Sequence record: BK067790.1
Strand: one strand, 5' to 3'
Length of the DNA: 34,343 nucleotides
In this document: in pieces, positions 3,069 through 33,516 of the stretch
How positions within the stretch are numbered: the stretch's first letter is position 1
Layout of the letters: each line of letters starts with the position of its first letter
The notes under the pieces: model-generated
Told to the model about the DNA's origin: nothing
Seen by the model: only the letters and a program-made list of their open reading frames with translations
Database searches by the model: none
Position numbers and translations under genes: made by a program

Positions 3069-3710
3069 ATGGGGCGTAGTTGTACTAAATGTGATAAAAA
3101 ACATTATGCCAAAGACCTATGTAAAAATCATTATGAAAAAACTGATGAAGCAAAGGCGAAAAGGAATAAAATAAATCAAAGACCTAAAAATAAAACACGA
3201 AAAAATAATTATAATTTAAAATACCATAAAAAAAATAGAGATACTTTATTATTAAAAATGAGAGAAAGGTATCAAAACCTCACACCTGAACAAATAGAAT
3301 CAGAAAGACTTCGTGGTAAACAAAGAACTGCTAATGGTGAATATAGTAACTATCATAAAAACAATAAAGATAAACGTAATGCTGAGTCTAAACAATGGCA
3401 TTTAGATAACCCAACATATCGTTCTGAATGGGCTAAAGCAAATCCGATAAAGCGTTTAAGAATTGAACAAAGATATGATAAAAAACATTCAAAGTTCTAT
3501 AATAAAATACAATTAAAATCATGGGGTGACTTTATCAAATATATCTTTCCAAGATGTATCAACTGTGGTTCAACCAAACAACTTGAATCTCATCACATAT
3601 TACCTAGAGCTCAGTTTCCTGAACTTGCACTTGCACCTGACAACGGTGTAACCCTATGCAAGAAATGTCATAATGAGATAACACAGTTGTTAAAGAAGTT
3701 TTACGCCTAG
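3069..3710 (+). CDS. HNH homing endonuclease
   Basis: C-terminal CINCGSTKQLESHHILP...DNGVTLCKKCHNEI (HNH motif); N-terminal CTKC..KHYAKDLCKNHY motif typical of phage HNH proteins; AT-rich and basic. Confidence 0.9.
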   Translation: MGRSCTKCDKKHYAKDLCKNHYEKTDEAKAKRNKINQRPKNKTRKNNYNLKYHKKNRDTLLLKMRERYQNLTPEQIESERLRGKQRTANGEYSNYHKNNKDKRNAESKQWHLDNPTYRSEWAKANPIKRLRIEQRYDKKHSKFYNKIQLKSWGDFIKYIFPRCINCGSTKQLESHHILPRAQFPELALAPDNGVTLCKKCHNEITQLLKKFYA

Positions 3711-18579: not shown

Positions 18580-18645
18580 TTAACTTAGCTGACAAGGTGG
18601 TTGGCTACCGATTAGTTAATTAGATGGGGGGAATAACCCCCCCTA
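18580..18645 (+). other. intergenic pair of stem-loops
   Basis: TTAACT...AGTTAA enclosing GGTGG-TTGG-CTACC; then G6-AATAA-C7 hairpin (18626-18643). Confidence 0.4.
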
Positions 18646-18747
18646 TTGACTGGACTTTGTAACAAGTGTTATACTTCTAACGTGGAATTGTTTGATGTTG
18701 ATGAGGGACTATACCAGTGTGAGATATGCATAATAGGCAACGAATGA
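18646..18747 (+). CDS. Zn-ribbon micro-protein (33 aa)
   Basis: TTG start; MTGLCNKCYTSNVELFDVDEGLYQCEICIIGNE*; ATGA-coupled to the nuclease. Confidence 0.6.
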   Translation: MTGLCNKCYTSNVELFDVDEGLYQCEICIIGNE

Positions 18748-20324: not shown

Positions 20325-20466
20325 ACAAGGAATATTAACGCAATCTTAATACTCGAATTTAATTATTATATAACAAATTTAAACCTTGAAAGGTTTGGTT
20401 CGTGACGAATTTAATCTAATCAGCGAACTTGAATTGAATTTCAGTATATTGTATTTAAAATTAAAG

Positions 20467-20616
20467 TAAACTTACTTAGGTGTCCCATGATAATTACGGG
20501 ACACTTTTTCTCTATTAACTTTCTTAGAACTGATTTCCAACAAAGTTAATGATGAAATTGTGTCCCGTAAACTCATTATACTTTAAATAAAACACTGACT
20601 TACTTAGGTAAGTTTA
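20467..20616. repeat. nested inverted and direct repeats (origin- or operator-like)
   Basis: TAAACTTAC/GTAAGTTTA outer IR; TTACGGGACAC (20494-20504)/GTGTCCCGTAA (20560-20570); GTGTCCC at 20480; ACTTACTTAGGT direct repeat at 20470 and 20598. Confidence 0.8.
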
Positions 20617-20642: not shown

Positions 20643-20837
20643 TTGAAAGTAGTTAAGAATTATTCACTAAATGTTGAAGTGGTAAAGGCATTTGACGAAG
20701 AAGTTTCAGACCAAACAAGGTCAAGACTTATTGAAGCACTTATGATAAAATTCTTGGTTGAATATACTAGGGGTAATGAGGAAACCCCTAGTATTGACGA
20801 TTCCAGTCTTACCACAGAAAAGGAAGCGATACAATGA
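20643..20837 (+). CDS. ribbon-helix-helix regulator
   Basis: VVKNYSLNVEVVKAFDEEV...RSRLIEALMIKFL: RHH strand-helix-helix pattern; ATGA-coupled to the helicase. Confidence 0.75.
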   Translation: MKVVKNYSLNVEVVKAFDEEVSDQTRSRLIEALMIKFLVEYTRGNEETPSIDDSSLTTEKEAIQ

Positions 20838-22498
20838 CTTTAATCCCAGATGATAAAACTATTACGAATTGTGATTTTTGTCTTAAAGATGATTATGAAA
20901 ACTGTACCAAAGGGGGTCTGTGTCCAGCAAATCCTAACAAGCCACAGTTAAAGAAACTGATTTTATGTGACCATTGTAAAAATGGGGGTGACTGGAAGGC
21001 ACATGAGGAATGTGAGAAAAACTATATCGCCAATGGATTAAAGACATTTTGTCAATGCCCTAGTCTATCTCATGGAAGAAATGCCACGACTTCTATGGAA
21101 CCAGTTTCTTTTATGGACAAGATAAAGTTTGATTCTCAGACTTTGGAAACCGTAAAACATGAGCATAAGGACAGAATTGATATTATTGCAACAAGACTTA
21201 TTGACAAATATAATTTTGTAACTGCTAGAGAAACAGACACTATCTACTACTTTAATGGTAAGATATATGATTCCAAAAACTGTGAGTCAGTAATCAAACA
21301 GGAAACCGAAATACAGATTGTTGAATGTACCAAGTCAGACAAGGCTGAAGTCATTGACAAGATAAAGTCAAGAACCTATGAAAGCCTAGACCATTTTGAC
21401 AAGGACATTGAAAGCCTAGTAGTGCAAAACGGTGTATTGAGTTTACAGACAATGGAATTAAGCCCACATACCCCCCTTAATTTGGCAAAAGTTTTGTTGC
21501 CTTTGAATTACGTCAAGCCTGAGTTTGAAATTGATATAGACGATTTGTTTAATTCCTTAAAGTCAAATCTCAAAGATACTTTGTTTTGGAAATTTTTGGA
21601 AACTTCTTTTACGCATGAGTACAAAGCTGATGAGGAATCAATGCTTTCAGTTTTGGAAATGATGGCTTCGACAATTATTAGAAAACAAATTGACGAAAGA
21701 AGTTTTATTATGCTAGGCAACGGTGCTAACGGAAAGTCAGTATGTCTTGACTATCTTTCTGCCATACTTGGCAGGGACAATGTTTCTCATATTCCGTTAC
21801 AGGTTTTGGCTGAAGATAAATTTGCCAGTGCAAGACTTGACGGAAAACACGCAAATATATTTTCTGACTTGGAAAGAAATGAGCTGTACCATACTGGTAT
21901 CATCAAGGACTTGTCTTCAGGCGAACCAGTTCATGCACAACAAAAAAACAAGAACGGTTTTGACCTGTACCCTTTTGCCACTTTGGTATTTTCATGTAAC
22001 AAGTTTCCCAGAGTCTTTGACCAGTCACAGGGATTTTTCAGACGTTGGATTTTGGTAAAGTGGGAAAGAAATTTTGAGAAAGACCCACAGAAAAATGACA
22101 ACTTGAAAAAGGAACTGCTGGAAAAGACAGAAGAAATGGACTTGGTTTTCTCATGTCTTTGTCATGTTGCAAAGAAACTTTATGACTCAAACAGATTTAC
22201 AAATCCTAAAGACTGGAAGACAGTTCAGAAATTATGGAATGAAAATTCTGACCCTTTGAACTGGTTTGTCGAGAACCATATCATTGATTCAAACGGAAGC
22301 CGTTCAAAGCGTGACACATATCAGTTTTACAAAAAAATAATGTTTGAAAAGGGCGAAGTCCCTTTGGGTATGGGTAAATTTAGCAAGGCATTTTCAGAAT
22401 ACTATGAGGATTCAAAGTCAGATCACGAAAGAATTTGGCTTAACATTGAGTTTAGGGAACCACAACAAACAACGTTAGAGGAAAGTGACAAAACATGA
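20834..22498 (+). CDS. D5-like superfamily 3 replicative helicase with N-terminal Cys/His clusters
   Basis: Walker A GNGANGKS, Walker B ANIFSD, motif B IKDLSSGEPV..QQKNK..F, motif C FSCN, GFFRRW; D5_N-like region; C-terminal wHTH-like FSKAF. Confidence 0.9.
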   Translation: MTLIPDDKTITNCDFCLKDDYENCTKGGLCPANPNKPQLKKLILCDHCKNGGDWKAHEECEKNYIANGLKTFCQCPSLSHGRNATTSMEPVSFMDKIKFDSQTLETVKHEHKDRIDIIATRLIDKYNFVTARETDTIYYFNGKIYDSKNCESVIKQETEIQIVECTKSDKAEVIDKIKSRTYESLDHFDKDIESLVVQNGVLSLQTMELSPHTPLNLAKVLLPLNYVKPEFEIDIDDLFNSLKSNLKDTLFWKFLETSFTHEYKADEESMLSVLEMMASTIIRKQIDERSFIMLGNGANGKSVCLDYLSAILGRDNVSHIPLQVLAEDKFASARLDGKHANIFSDLERNELYHTGIIKDLSSGEPVHAQQKNKNGFDLYPFATLVFSCNKFPRVFDQSQGFFRRWILVKWERNFEKDPQKNDNLKKELLEKTEEMDLVFSCLCHVAKKLYDSNRFTNPKDWKTVQKLWNENSDPLNWFVENHIIDSNGSRSKRDTYQFYKKIMFEKGEVPLGMGKFSKAFSEYYEDSKSDHERIWLNIEFREPQQTTLEESDKT

Positions 22499-32052: not shown

Positions 32053-32211
32053 TTAGAAACCCCTCACAAAATTGGTACTAATTCTTTCTATTTCTTTTGC
32101 TATTTTTGAGGCTGTGAAAAAATCGCCTGTAACAATAGCTATTCTAGCCTTATCGGCTAACCGTGTCAATGTTTCGGTATCTTGAAACATTTGTGTTTGT
32201 TGTGTTTTCAT
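32053..32211 (-). CDS. first gene of the main leftward operon (52 aa)
   Basis: MKTQQTQMFQDTETLTRLADKARIAIVTGDFFTASKIAKEIERISTNFVRGF*; TTAATTAA about 22 nt upstream. Not in the ORF track. Confidence 0.7.
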   Translation of the reverse strand: MKTQQTQMFQDTETLTRLADKARIAIVTGDFFTASKIAKEIERISTNFVRGF

Positions 32212-32260: not shown

Positions 32261-32820
32261 CCCCCCCTATTTCCAGTCCAGTCATAAAATTAGACTTTGT
32301 ATTTTCTAAAAATATCATGGTATTTTTTCGGAAGTACATCAATTTAATCAAATTACCATATCATTTTTTGATAAAGTCCATGTCAATATTATTTTAGTAA
32401 TTGGTTTAGATTTCTTAACTTCTAAATTATGTTTTACAGATAACCAAACTTTGAACCCCAAATAGTCACAAATCAATAAAATCAATCAATTTCATTTCTA
32501 TTGTCTAATATTGATAATAGCATGGGCTTCTCTATATATGGGCGTGGGTGTGCCTGATACATATTAGCCATAAGGTGCGATTTTCAAAATCCTGTATAGA
32601 TTAGTTATTTTTGAAAATAAAAAAAATTTAATCAACTTTCTTTAATCATTCTGTCAAGTATTATTATTTTGACTGGAAATATAGGTGCTATATAAAAAGC
32701 CTAGTGCACAGTCTGGACTGGAAATATAGGTGGCATGATTTCAATATTTCATAACTGGAGTGGAAACAAGGGGGGTTTATATTATGACTAAGCCCACGAC
32801 TGGAGTGGAAATGGGGGTTT
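32261..32820. promoter_or_regulatory. candidate replication origin: ORB-like repeats with G-strings flanking an AT-rich tract
   Basis: Four (C/G)TGGAAA-core repeats on + (cores at 32674, 32719, 32761, 32806; spacing 45/42/45) and one inverted copy at 32261-32283; AT-rich 32290-32670 between them. Confidence 0.6.
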
Positions 32821-32922
32821 TTTTGGACTCACCAATTCTTATCGGGTCTAAGCCATGCAACGGACTTTTATGTACAAAATCTTATAACAGTCCATTTATG
32901 TACAAAGTTAGGGTGATATGCT

Positions 32923-33516
32923 ATGCCACAGTCCAGACTTCCAGACATTAATTCTGCGTTCATTAGGTATAGAAGCGAAGCCATTCACGCTTTACAGACT
33001 AAGAACTGGTCTGCCATGCATGGTGCATTAAACGGTATTAACTCATTGTTGCCAGTTGATTATCAGGTTATAATATCAAGCCAAGACTATGAGCAACTGG
33101 CAAAGACTGAGATAACTTATGCTTGTGGCAGTTGTAGTGAATCCATAGACAAGTCTAATGTTCAGGTTTTTGAGCTAATGCCTGACAGTATGCAATCGTT
33201 ACTACATGGTCGAACGTTTAATAAAGTATGGAATTGTATAAAATGTCACAGTACGAATATGTTGAACACTACTGCCATTTCACAGACAATGCTTCAGAAC
33301 CCTACATACTTGGGAATTGTACCTGACCCACCTGAAAGAAAAAATGGACTTATGGATAGAATGAAGTTTAACATAGAGATTGAAAGATGGGGTTGGCTTT
33401 TACTAAACGAAGAAGAATATAAGATGGCAAAGTTTAGAGATGATAACTGGAACAAGGGTGATGAAGAAATGGGTGATATTGACAATTCATTAGATGATAA
33501 AGAGGGCGATACATAA
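32923..33516 (+). CDS. Zn-finger-containing hypothetical protein (197 aa)
   Basis: YACGSC...WNCIKC; TAATG-coupled to the ATPase; TTTATGTACAAA repeated upstream (32867, 32895). Confidence 0.8.
   Translation: MPQSRLPDINSAFIRYRSEAIHALQTKNWSAMHGALNGINSLLPVDYQVIISSQDYEQLAKTEITYACGSCSESIDKSNVQVFELMPDSMQSLLHGRTFNKVWNCIKCHSTNMLNTTAISQTMLQNPTYLGIVPDPPERKNGLMDRMKFNIEIERWGWLLLNEEEYKMAKFRDDNWNKGDEEMGDIDNSLDDKEGDT

Follow-up and report, generated by a model that had tools for sequence, protein, structure and literature searches.

Origin recognition boxes (ORBs) on mobile elements that bring their own orc1/cdc6 gene are familiar from haloarchaea. In SSV1 (Fuselloviridae), the early divergent promoter region holds tandem operators that are bound by a viral repressor, the ribbon-helix-helix protein F55. 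EBV has, beside oriLyt, the latent origin oriP, which uses the host ORC and MCM and recruits ORC through the viral adaptor EBNA1.

For the chromosome of the archaea considered here, the origin of N. maritimus has been mapped next to cdc6, with ORB repeats, as far as articles citing that work relay it (Pelve et al. 2013, cited in PMC4010727 and PMC5797428). A generic archaeal ORB consensus, CTTCCAGTGGAAACGAAAGGGGT, is available in the form in which a later article reproduces it (Pelve et al. 2013, via PMC4153887), as is the common motif of Ori-Finder 2 (PMC4164010). Among archaeal viruses, the pleolipovirus HHPV4 has, according to the accessible part of its report, Ori-Finder 2 ORB matches near an extreme of base disparity that are read as its origin (PMC5867852), and for the Aeropyrum virus AGV1 the absence of ORBs has been noted in the literature. 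We found no report in which a virus without an initiator gene is shown to carry the ORB pair of its host's origin including the spacer, nor one for viruses of Nitrososphaeria. An ORB origin is judged below by boxes that carry a G-string, boxes that match those of the lineage's own chromosomal origin, inverted boxes that flank an AT-rich region, and a cognate orc1/cdc6 gene that adjoins the origin.

The virus NMM1, whose likely hosts are marine ammonia-oxidizing archaea, was assembled from a metagenome and belongs to the proposed family Nipumfusiviridae (Ni et al. 2024, PMC10866085), whose members are known from metagenomes only; a term search of the main text of that paper returned nothing on origins, intergenic regions, or repeats. 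Judged from its sequence, an intergenic element of NMM1 consists of five host-type ORBs, one to the left and four to the right of an AT-rich tract, is equivalent to the ORB module of the Nitrosopumilaceae chromosomal origin, and is probably descended from it.

The NMM1 Genome and the Box-bearing Gap

The window is the whole genome of this Nitrosopumilaceae spindle-shaped virus, 34,343 bases with ∼36% G+C (BK067790.1). The genome closes into a circle, its ATPase gene running from the right end in frame into ORF1 at the left end, and the IMG/VR contig of the same virus has a further 127 bases through a terminal overlap. The box-bearing gap is bounded by ORF53 (32053-32211, minus strand) and by ORF54/ORF55 (plus strand), and transcription diverges there. 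Its features are as follows.

32261-32283, minus strand: box A, a full ORB with a G7 string, minus strand GACTGGACTGGAAATAGGGGGGG; 33.3 bits with the viral matrix and 31.3 bits with the host-derived matrix
32284-32670, no strand: AT-rich tract, 387 bp between the inverted boxes, 25% G+C; candidate unwinding region
32520-32640, no strand: conserved block inside the tract, with CTTCTCTATAT..GCG, GTATAGATTAG, and TTTGAAAAyAAAAAAA, from an alignment of five marine relatives
32666-32688, plus strand: box B1, a half box, ATTTTGACTGGAAATATAGGTGC, that abuts the AT-rich tract; 22.1 bits with the viral matrix
32707-32781, plus strand: two-box unit B2-spacer-B3, with B2 at 32711-32733 (31.0 bits) and B3 at 32753-32778 (29.7 bits)
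32798-32820, plus strand: box B4, a full ORB with a G5 string, GACTGGAGTGGAAATGGGGGTTT; 32.8 bits with the viral matrix and 26.4 bits with the host-derived matrix
32850-32922, plus strand: conserved block upstream of ORF55, with TTTATGTACAAA twice (32867 and 32895)

A first-pass annotation, made from the letters alone, had picked out the repeats in this gap, and every string recurs where it was placed: GACTGGAAATATAGGTG at 32671-32687 and 32716-32732, ACTGGAGTGGAAA at 32754-32766 (followed by CAAGGGGGG) and 32799-32811 (followed by TGGGGG), and the inverted copy, which reads CCCCCCCTATTTCCAGTCCAGTC on the plus strand, at 32261-32283. The TGGAAA cores are indeed spaced 45, 42, and 45 bp apart, as it had measured. 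All viral boxes share one register, (G)ACTGGAsTGGAAAy followed after 1-4 bases by a run of G (boxes A, B3, and B4) or by GGTG (B1 and B2), and the G-string expected of ORB origins is present in A (G7), B3 (G6), and B4 (G5), the GGTG variant being found also in some host ORBs (..AAGGTGT). Box B1 is without the first CTGGA and is preceded by ATTTT, and the spacer between B2 and B3 reads CATGATT..TTTCATAA. Box A points away from the AT-rich tract, with the end of its G-string 50 nt from the start codon of ORF53, and B4 precedes the ORF55 start codon by 103 nt. Two of the five 100-bp windows with the lowest stability genome-wide lie in the tract; the lowest of all lies elsewhere.

A 23-nt matrix built from the viral boxes returned, at 12 bits or more on both strands of the 34 kb, five sites that all lie in this gap, and a matrix of host ORBs returned, at 8 bits or more, just four sites, which are boxes A, B2, B3, and B4. 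Because both matrices match only inside the gap, the cluster is beyond chance. The generic archaeal ORB motif of Ori-Finder 2 is insufficient as proof on its own, since single boxes score only 14-16 out of 20 with it and two unrelated coding sites also reach 16. The first-pass annotation had named a skew inflection as a further mark of an origin. An inflection with a GC-skew minimum near 32.3 kb is real, but it falls where the coding strand switches, and so does another inflection at 25.4 kb, and it is therefore not independent evidence; GC/AT skew was rejected as evidence of an origin. A scan for bacterial-type promoters and terminators was uninformative for an archaeal virus.

Both conserved blocks are kept in all five marine relatives regardless of the boxes. 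The block inside the tract (32520-32640) persists in the box-less genomes too, is not tied to the ORBs, and has no assigned role; its conserved center gave no fold beyond that of shuffled sequences, no Rfam family, and a negative tRNA check. The block at 32850-32922, present with or without ORBs, is probably the promoter or operator of the rightward operon and separate from the ORBs. The annotated ORF54 (32784-32951, 55 aa) overlaps box B4 and this promoter block, and since it is full length in NMP1 only it is probably not a real gene.

Elsewhere in the genome, ORF7 (3069-3710) is an HNH endonuclease gene that holds the least stable 100-bp window of NMM1; among the relatives full-length copies occur only in NMM1 and NMJ1, with a 42-aa partial match in NYM1, and the gene is probably a mobile insertion. 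Between ORF17 and ORF18, a palindrome (G6-AATAA-C7, then TATTGACTGGAC, at 18626-18660) is kept in NMM1, NMP1, NMH1, and NMC1; it may be a terminator-like hairpin, an attachment site, or another binding site, and its role is unassigned. ORF28 encodes a tyrosine integrase, and the tRNA check found no tRNA-like attachment site in NMM1.

Comparison with Host cdc6 Loci

A pattern scan for two viral box cores in tandem, run on one genome per species across 185,579 species, returned 14 loci. Three are archaeal, at least two of them from Nitrosopumilaceae, and the other 11 are bacterial repeats with poor full-box scores. One of the archaeal loci, on a fragment from Ca. Nitrosopelagicus (L033), has three boxes ∼300 bp from orc1/cdc6, within the 522 bp of intergenic DNA that immediately precede this gene. 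The encoded protein has Cdc6_lid, Cdc6_C, and AAA_22 domains and 35% identity to Aeropyrum ORC1, and is the common marine thaumarchaeal Cdc6; the fragment also bears a housekeeping GGGP synthase gene. A. pernix ORC1 itself was discarded as a query toward thaumarchaeal Cdc6, its best 120 matches all being from Thermoprotei.

We collected 80 metagenomic cdc6 loci by protein similarity alone and scanned the 52 with at least 500 bp of upstream sequence, using a matrix built from the viral boxes only. Every one of the 52 loci was matched. The scanned DNA, 255 kb, gave 127 matches, and 124 of them occupy four fixed positions between 200 and 430 bp upstream of cdc6. Relative to the cdc6 start codon, the host boxes are placed as follows.

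-410, plus orientation: box
-375, plus orientation: box
about -310, plus orientation: weaker box
about -228, inverted: box

The first-pass annotation had set alignment with the ORBs of the Nitrosopumilus oriC as a test in advance, and its outcome, with all 52 host loci matched at fixed positions, is positive and stronger than expected. The consensus of the host boxes is GCCTGGAsTGGAAATnnGGGGGTATG, and box A is identical to the ORB of one host locus (L072) at 20 of 20 positions. The B2-spacer-B3 unit aligns with host ORB1-spacer-ORB2 (blastn, 77.6% over 76 nt, E = 3e-6), and blastn of the complete viral genome against 81 host cdc6 loci gave no other match; the spacer common to virus and host reads CATGATT..TTTCATrA. 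The earlier reservation that the left half of the viral box is CTGGA rather than the canonical TTCCA can be withdrawn, because host ORBs also read CTGGAsTGGAAAT..GGGGGT; in marine Nitrosopumilaceae, the ORBs upstream of cdc6 ordinarily have this CTGGA half.

The likeness extends to the arrangement. The most AT-rich host stretch, from -220 to -140 (78-85% A+T), is flanked by the inverted box on the left and by a weak forward box at about -130 on the right, both of which point outward, and the box that abuts it, inverted at -228, is a half box preceded by a run of A (AAAAAGACTGGAAACAATGGTGT). The same polarity is observed in the virus, where A points left and B1-B4 point right, and where the half box B1, which resembles the host half box, abuts the tract. 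The inverted boxes around an AT-rich tract that the first-pass annotation had likened to an origin thus correspond to the cdc6-proximal part of the host origin. Two of the features by which we judge an ORB origin are accordingly present, namely boxes that match the lineage's own chromosomal origin and inverted boxes that flank an AT-rich region (A on the minus strand, B1-B4 on the plus strand, 387 bp at 25% G+C).

Since the mapped origin of N. maritimus lies at cdc6 with ORBs, the host region is taken as oriC by homology, and for these loci, which come from metagenomes, that homology is the basis of their status as origins. The scan from host to virus is not fully independent, because the host boxes for the host matrix were chosen with the viral matrix, and the independent evidence is the fixed position of the boxes in loci collected by protein homology. 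From the 52 environmental loci, the putative Nitrosopumilaceae ORB can be defined as CTGGAsTGGAAAT..GGGGGT in a fixed layout upstream of cdc6.

Three tandem ORB boxes were also seen in a Nitrosopumilaceae MAG (L022 2196-2263; CBDCOI010000001.1, a 2.13-Mb contig), between a DUF7482 gene and a SIR2-like gene and with a DDE transposase nearby. The 8 kb of this contig that was examined contains no cdc6, and the boxes may represent either an ORB cluster outside an origin or what is left of a mobile element.

Distribution of the Boxes among Related Viruses

Ten genomes of the family were examined, and box arrays are present in three of them and a single box in one (NBD1). NMP1 has all five boxes, almost base for base as in NMM1, with box-bearing flanks that are mostly 95-100% identical between the two viruses and a gap center (∼32360-32560) that is only 35-62% identical. 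The divergent gap itself is kept in four close marine relatives (NMP1, NMJ1, NMH1, and NMC1), across which ORF55 and the ATPase are 82-95% identical. In NMJ1 one degenerate unit remains and no box is intact, and the cluster is absent from NMH1, NMC1, and NYM1. In the freshwater virus NBC1, the ATPase is 46% identical and the DNA of the gap cannot be aligned with that of NMM1, yet its homologous gap, and no other part of that genome, has six boxes of the same kind. The leftward one lies 29 nt from the start codon with which the leftward operon opens. The first-pass annotation had proposed positional conservation in related viruses as a check, and this held in part: the boxes recur in the same gap of NMP1 and NBC1, but are missing from NMH1, NMC1, and NYM1.

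Because the NBC1 boxes persist where the surrounding DNA has become unalignable, the motif behaves as a putative binding site under selection, an assignment made without binding data. The box module also appears, from its distribution, to be exchangeable, accessory, and non-essential, since it is absent from closer relatives and present in the distant NBC1. The boxes cannot be the essential origin of the family, because NMH1 and NMJ1 keep the SF3 helicase (88-93%) without an intact cluster. In NMH1 (L002, BK067784, about 2460-2570), an inverted pair, AAATAAGGGGGG / AAATAGGGGGGGG, replaces the boxes and has G-strings without the TGGAsTGGAAA core.

A wider search for the family in IMG/VR, by ATPase and by alignment, found nine family contigs only. 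The G-string ORB pattern in IMG/VR occurs in NMM1, NMP1, and two contigs with single matches. These two are low-GC viral contigs (L116 769-791 and L117 5965-5987) with one ORB each, at 25.9 and 33.0 bits, and no cdc6 or Nipumfusiviridae genes were found on the DNA examined. Another contig (IMGVR_UViG_3300031760_000328, L021 3040-3420) has ∼14 dyad iterons (TTTCCACTGGAGTGGAAA) that adjoin and overlap a 145-aa wHTH-like ORF; it was not used as a related case, its proteins being unrelated, with no family matches, and its likeness to the ORB core being possibly a coincidence.

Two boxes ending in ..ATGGTCT and ..ATGGTTG were found on a chromosome fragment (L027 3264-3311, MAG SBBK01000060.1) that is Nitrosotenuis-like, its ATPase being 70% identical to that of Ca. 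Nitrosotenuis. The freshwater virus NBC1 has this box variant, which is lacking from all 62 marine host boxes. There is thus a hint that the boxes of the viruses may track host lineage, drawn from one Nitrosotenuis-like fragment whose cdc6 context was not recovered.

A Helicase-linked Repeat Module

A second repeat-bearing region lies in an AT-rich gap directly upstream of ORF20-ORF21, which span 20643-22498 and include a P4/D5-type SF3 helicase (20834-22498).

20449-20616, no strand: inverted repeats TTACGGGACAC/GTGTCCCGTAA (36-nt arms), with ACTTACTTAGGT twice

The second least stable 100-bp window of the NMM1 genome starts at 20573. Since the genomes with these repeats are precisely the four that have this type of helicase, the module is probably the cognate origin of the helicase. 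The ORB boxes do not travel with the replicase in this way: NMH1 (93%) and NMJ1 (88%) have the helicase without intact boxes, and NBC1 has boxes and only a remote helicase (26% over 94 aa). The idea that the boxes are iterons of the viral replicase, which would call for the two to travel together, is accordingly not supported.

Candidate Occupants of the Boxes and Proposed Function

The statement in the first-pass annotation that no orc1/cdc6 is evident in the virus survives a direct search, tblastn with host Cdc6 against eight complete and two partial genomes of the family giving a best E of 2.7, and no Cdc6 or AAA_22 family matches were found among the viral proteins scanned. The cognate initiator gene that would adjoin an ORB origin is therefore wanting in the virus. 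Because the virus is without an orc1/cdc6 gene, the most likely occupant is the host's single Orc1/Cdc6, an inference of which we are fairly confident in the absence of binding data. A viral protein could instead recognize the boxes, either as iterons of the helicase or ATPase or as operators of a small viral regulator that perhaps also targets the host origin, and the position of the boxes beside ORF53 and the ORF55/ATPase operon would suit this. The adjacent 197-aa/ATPase operon had been put forward in the first-pass annotation as the source of such a binder, a suggestion now disfavored, as its orthologues persist at 82-95% identity in box-less relatives; that range covers the ATPase, ORF55, and the SF3 helicase, and the profile of the ATPase finds only P-loop matches among PDB sequences. 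ORF53 co-occurs with boxes in NMM1, NMP1, and NMJ1 but is absent from NBC1. ORF33 (104 aa, DUF4241-like) occurs in every one of the four genomes with boxes and is missing from the fully sequenced box-less NMH1, NMC1, and NYM1, but it is also present in NMJ1, which has no intact boxes (4/5 versus 0/3, p ∼0.07 before allowing for relatedness). Neither ORF53 nor ORF33 has a recognized DNA-binding domain, no DNA-binding family was found for any of the candidate proteins, and the same boxes stand at host origins, where a viral protein is not needed; a viral binder is for these reasons improbable.

With the host protein as the inferred occupant, we propose that the element is a host-initiator-dependent replicator. 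Host Orc1/Cdc6 would occupy the boxes and recruit host MCM at the AT-rich tract, after which the host replisome would replicate the viral episome. While the virus is carried chronically, this copying would probably follow the cell cycle of the host. The SF3 helicase and the adjacent inverted repeats at ∼20.5 kb would form a second, self-encoded replicator, and chronic persistence, which is expected of this virus, would be well served by two replicators, of which one is self-driven and the other licensed by the host. This reading is favored because the inverted layout, the AT-rich tract, the half box, and the conserved spacer exceed the needs of an operator or a decoy. Origin activity is nonetheless an inference made without replication data, and we regard the question as evenly poised. 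The cluster is dispensable, since NMH1, NMC1, and NYM1 do without it and NMJ1 retains just one degenerate unit; the helicase-linked inverted repeats are a competing candidate origin; the AT-rich tract is five times the host length and is not the least stable DNA of the genome; the leftward box of NMM1 and NBC1, 29-50 nt from a start codon, also suits promoter control; and the skew inflection is confounded with coding strand. A fuller version of the proposal, possible but held only tentatively, is that the virus captured the host ORB pair and uses the host's single Orc1/Cdc6 for a cell-cycle-licensed "latent" origin beside the helicase-driven one, with each viral lineage carrying the ORB variant of its own host, so that NMM1 and NMP1 would match marine Nitrosopelagicus-like origins and NBC1 the ..ATGGTCT boxes of the Nitrosotenuis-like genome.

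The same occupant could act without any origin firing, as a transcription factor for both diverging operons that ties their expression to the replication or cell-cycle state of the host. Sulfolobus Orc1-2, an Orc1/Cdc6 paralogue, acts as a transcription regulator in the DNA damage response, and such a role would fit a module that close relatives can dispense with and in which each outermost box faces an operon. The end of the leftward box, 50 nt (NMM1) or 29 nt (NBC1) from the start codon, is at or next to the position of an archaeal BRE/TATA element, and host ORBs too lie upstream of a gene, cdc6 itself. However, four tandem boxes and one inverted box around a long AT-rich tract exceed what an operator needs and copy the layout of an origin, and the promoter block that all relatives keep (32850-32922) lies outside the boxes. 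We therefore consider control of transcription alone unlikely, while promoter and origin roles are not exclusive. It is less plausible still that the viral genome, present in many copies, serves as a decoy that titrates host Orc1/Cdc6 from the chromosomal origin and delays host replication. Each viral genome has five high-scoring ORBs against three to five at the host origin, the helicase-linked module would be available for viral replication, and in Haloarcula a negative regulatory effect on an origin has been proposed for ORB clusters that lie outside origins (PMC4010727). A decoy would need neither the AT-rich tract nor the inverted arrangement nor the conserved spacer, and in the absence of titration data such an action remains conjectural and improbable. 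The boxes as attachment or recombination sites that steer integration beside the host origin would make use of the tyrosine integrase ORF28 in a genome without a tRNA-like attachment site, would draw on the 20 bases identical between box A and a host ORB, and would recall the Nitrosopumilaceae genome with three tandem boxes beside a transposase and a SIR2-like gene, away from cdc6. One site would suffice for this purpose, however, five oriented copies with origin-like architecture would be unexpected, and no provirus junction at the host origin was found among 81 host loci, which leaves this the explanation to which we give scarcely any credence.

The host-initiator-dependent replicator offers a testable hypothesis for the replication of a virus without polymerase or initiator in archaea that are very abundant in the ocean. 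The boxes are also sequence-based evidence for host assignment that is independent of CRISPR spacers and tRNA matches, and if lineage-specific variants prove to be the rule they would both set and reveal host range. If origin function were confirmed, the element would be an archaeal counterpart of the eukaryotic viral latent origins that use host ORC and MCM.

Comparison with Known Systems

In its sequence and layout the NMM1 element would qualify as an ORB origin, and it fails in having no initiator gene in cis; neither binding nor firing has been demonstrated. Like the generic ORB consensus, the viral boxes have an sTGGAAAy core, a short purine spacer, and a GGGGT string, but their left half, CTGGA, is a direct repeat of TGGA and not the dyad-forming TCCA, as is also the case in the host lineage. 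HHPV4, like NMM1, is an archaeal virus genome with host-type ORB matches; in the part of its report that is accessible these are motif matches in a supplementary table, without comparison with the host's own origin, whereas in NMM1 there is homology to the host ORB pair and spacer. SSV1, also a spindle-shaped archaeal virus, likewise has repeats between diverging operons, but these are virus-specific and bound by a viral protein, whereas the NMM1 repeats are the boxes of the host origin and no matching viral regulator was found. With EBV oriP there is no evolutionary relationship, and the viral adaptor EBNA1 contrasts with the initiator-binding sites of the host that would be carried on the virus itself; as in our proposal, an episome is copied by the licensed initiator of the host, with a separate virus-driven module alongside.

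The cdc6-linked (oriC1-type) origin of Nitrosopumilaceae differs from the viral element in the length of its AT-rich stretch (∼80 bp against 387 bp), in its tandem spacing (38 bp against 42-45 bp), and in its GTTAAC repeats, which by eye are absent from the virus. The viral element lies between operons, with no orc1/cdc6 in cis or elsewhere in the virus. What the two have in common is the box itself, CTGGAsTGGAAAT followed after 2-3 nt by GGGGGT or GGTGT, together with the spacer of the tandem pair, a half box at the AT-rich stretch, and boxes that point outward on both sides.
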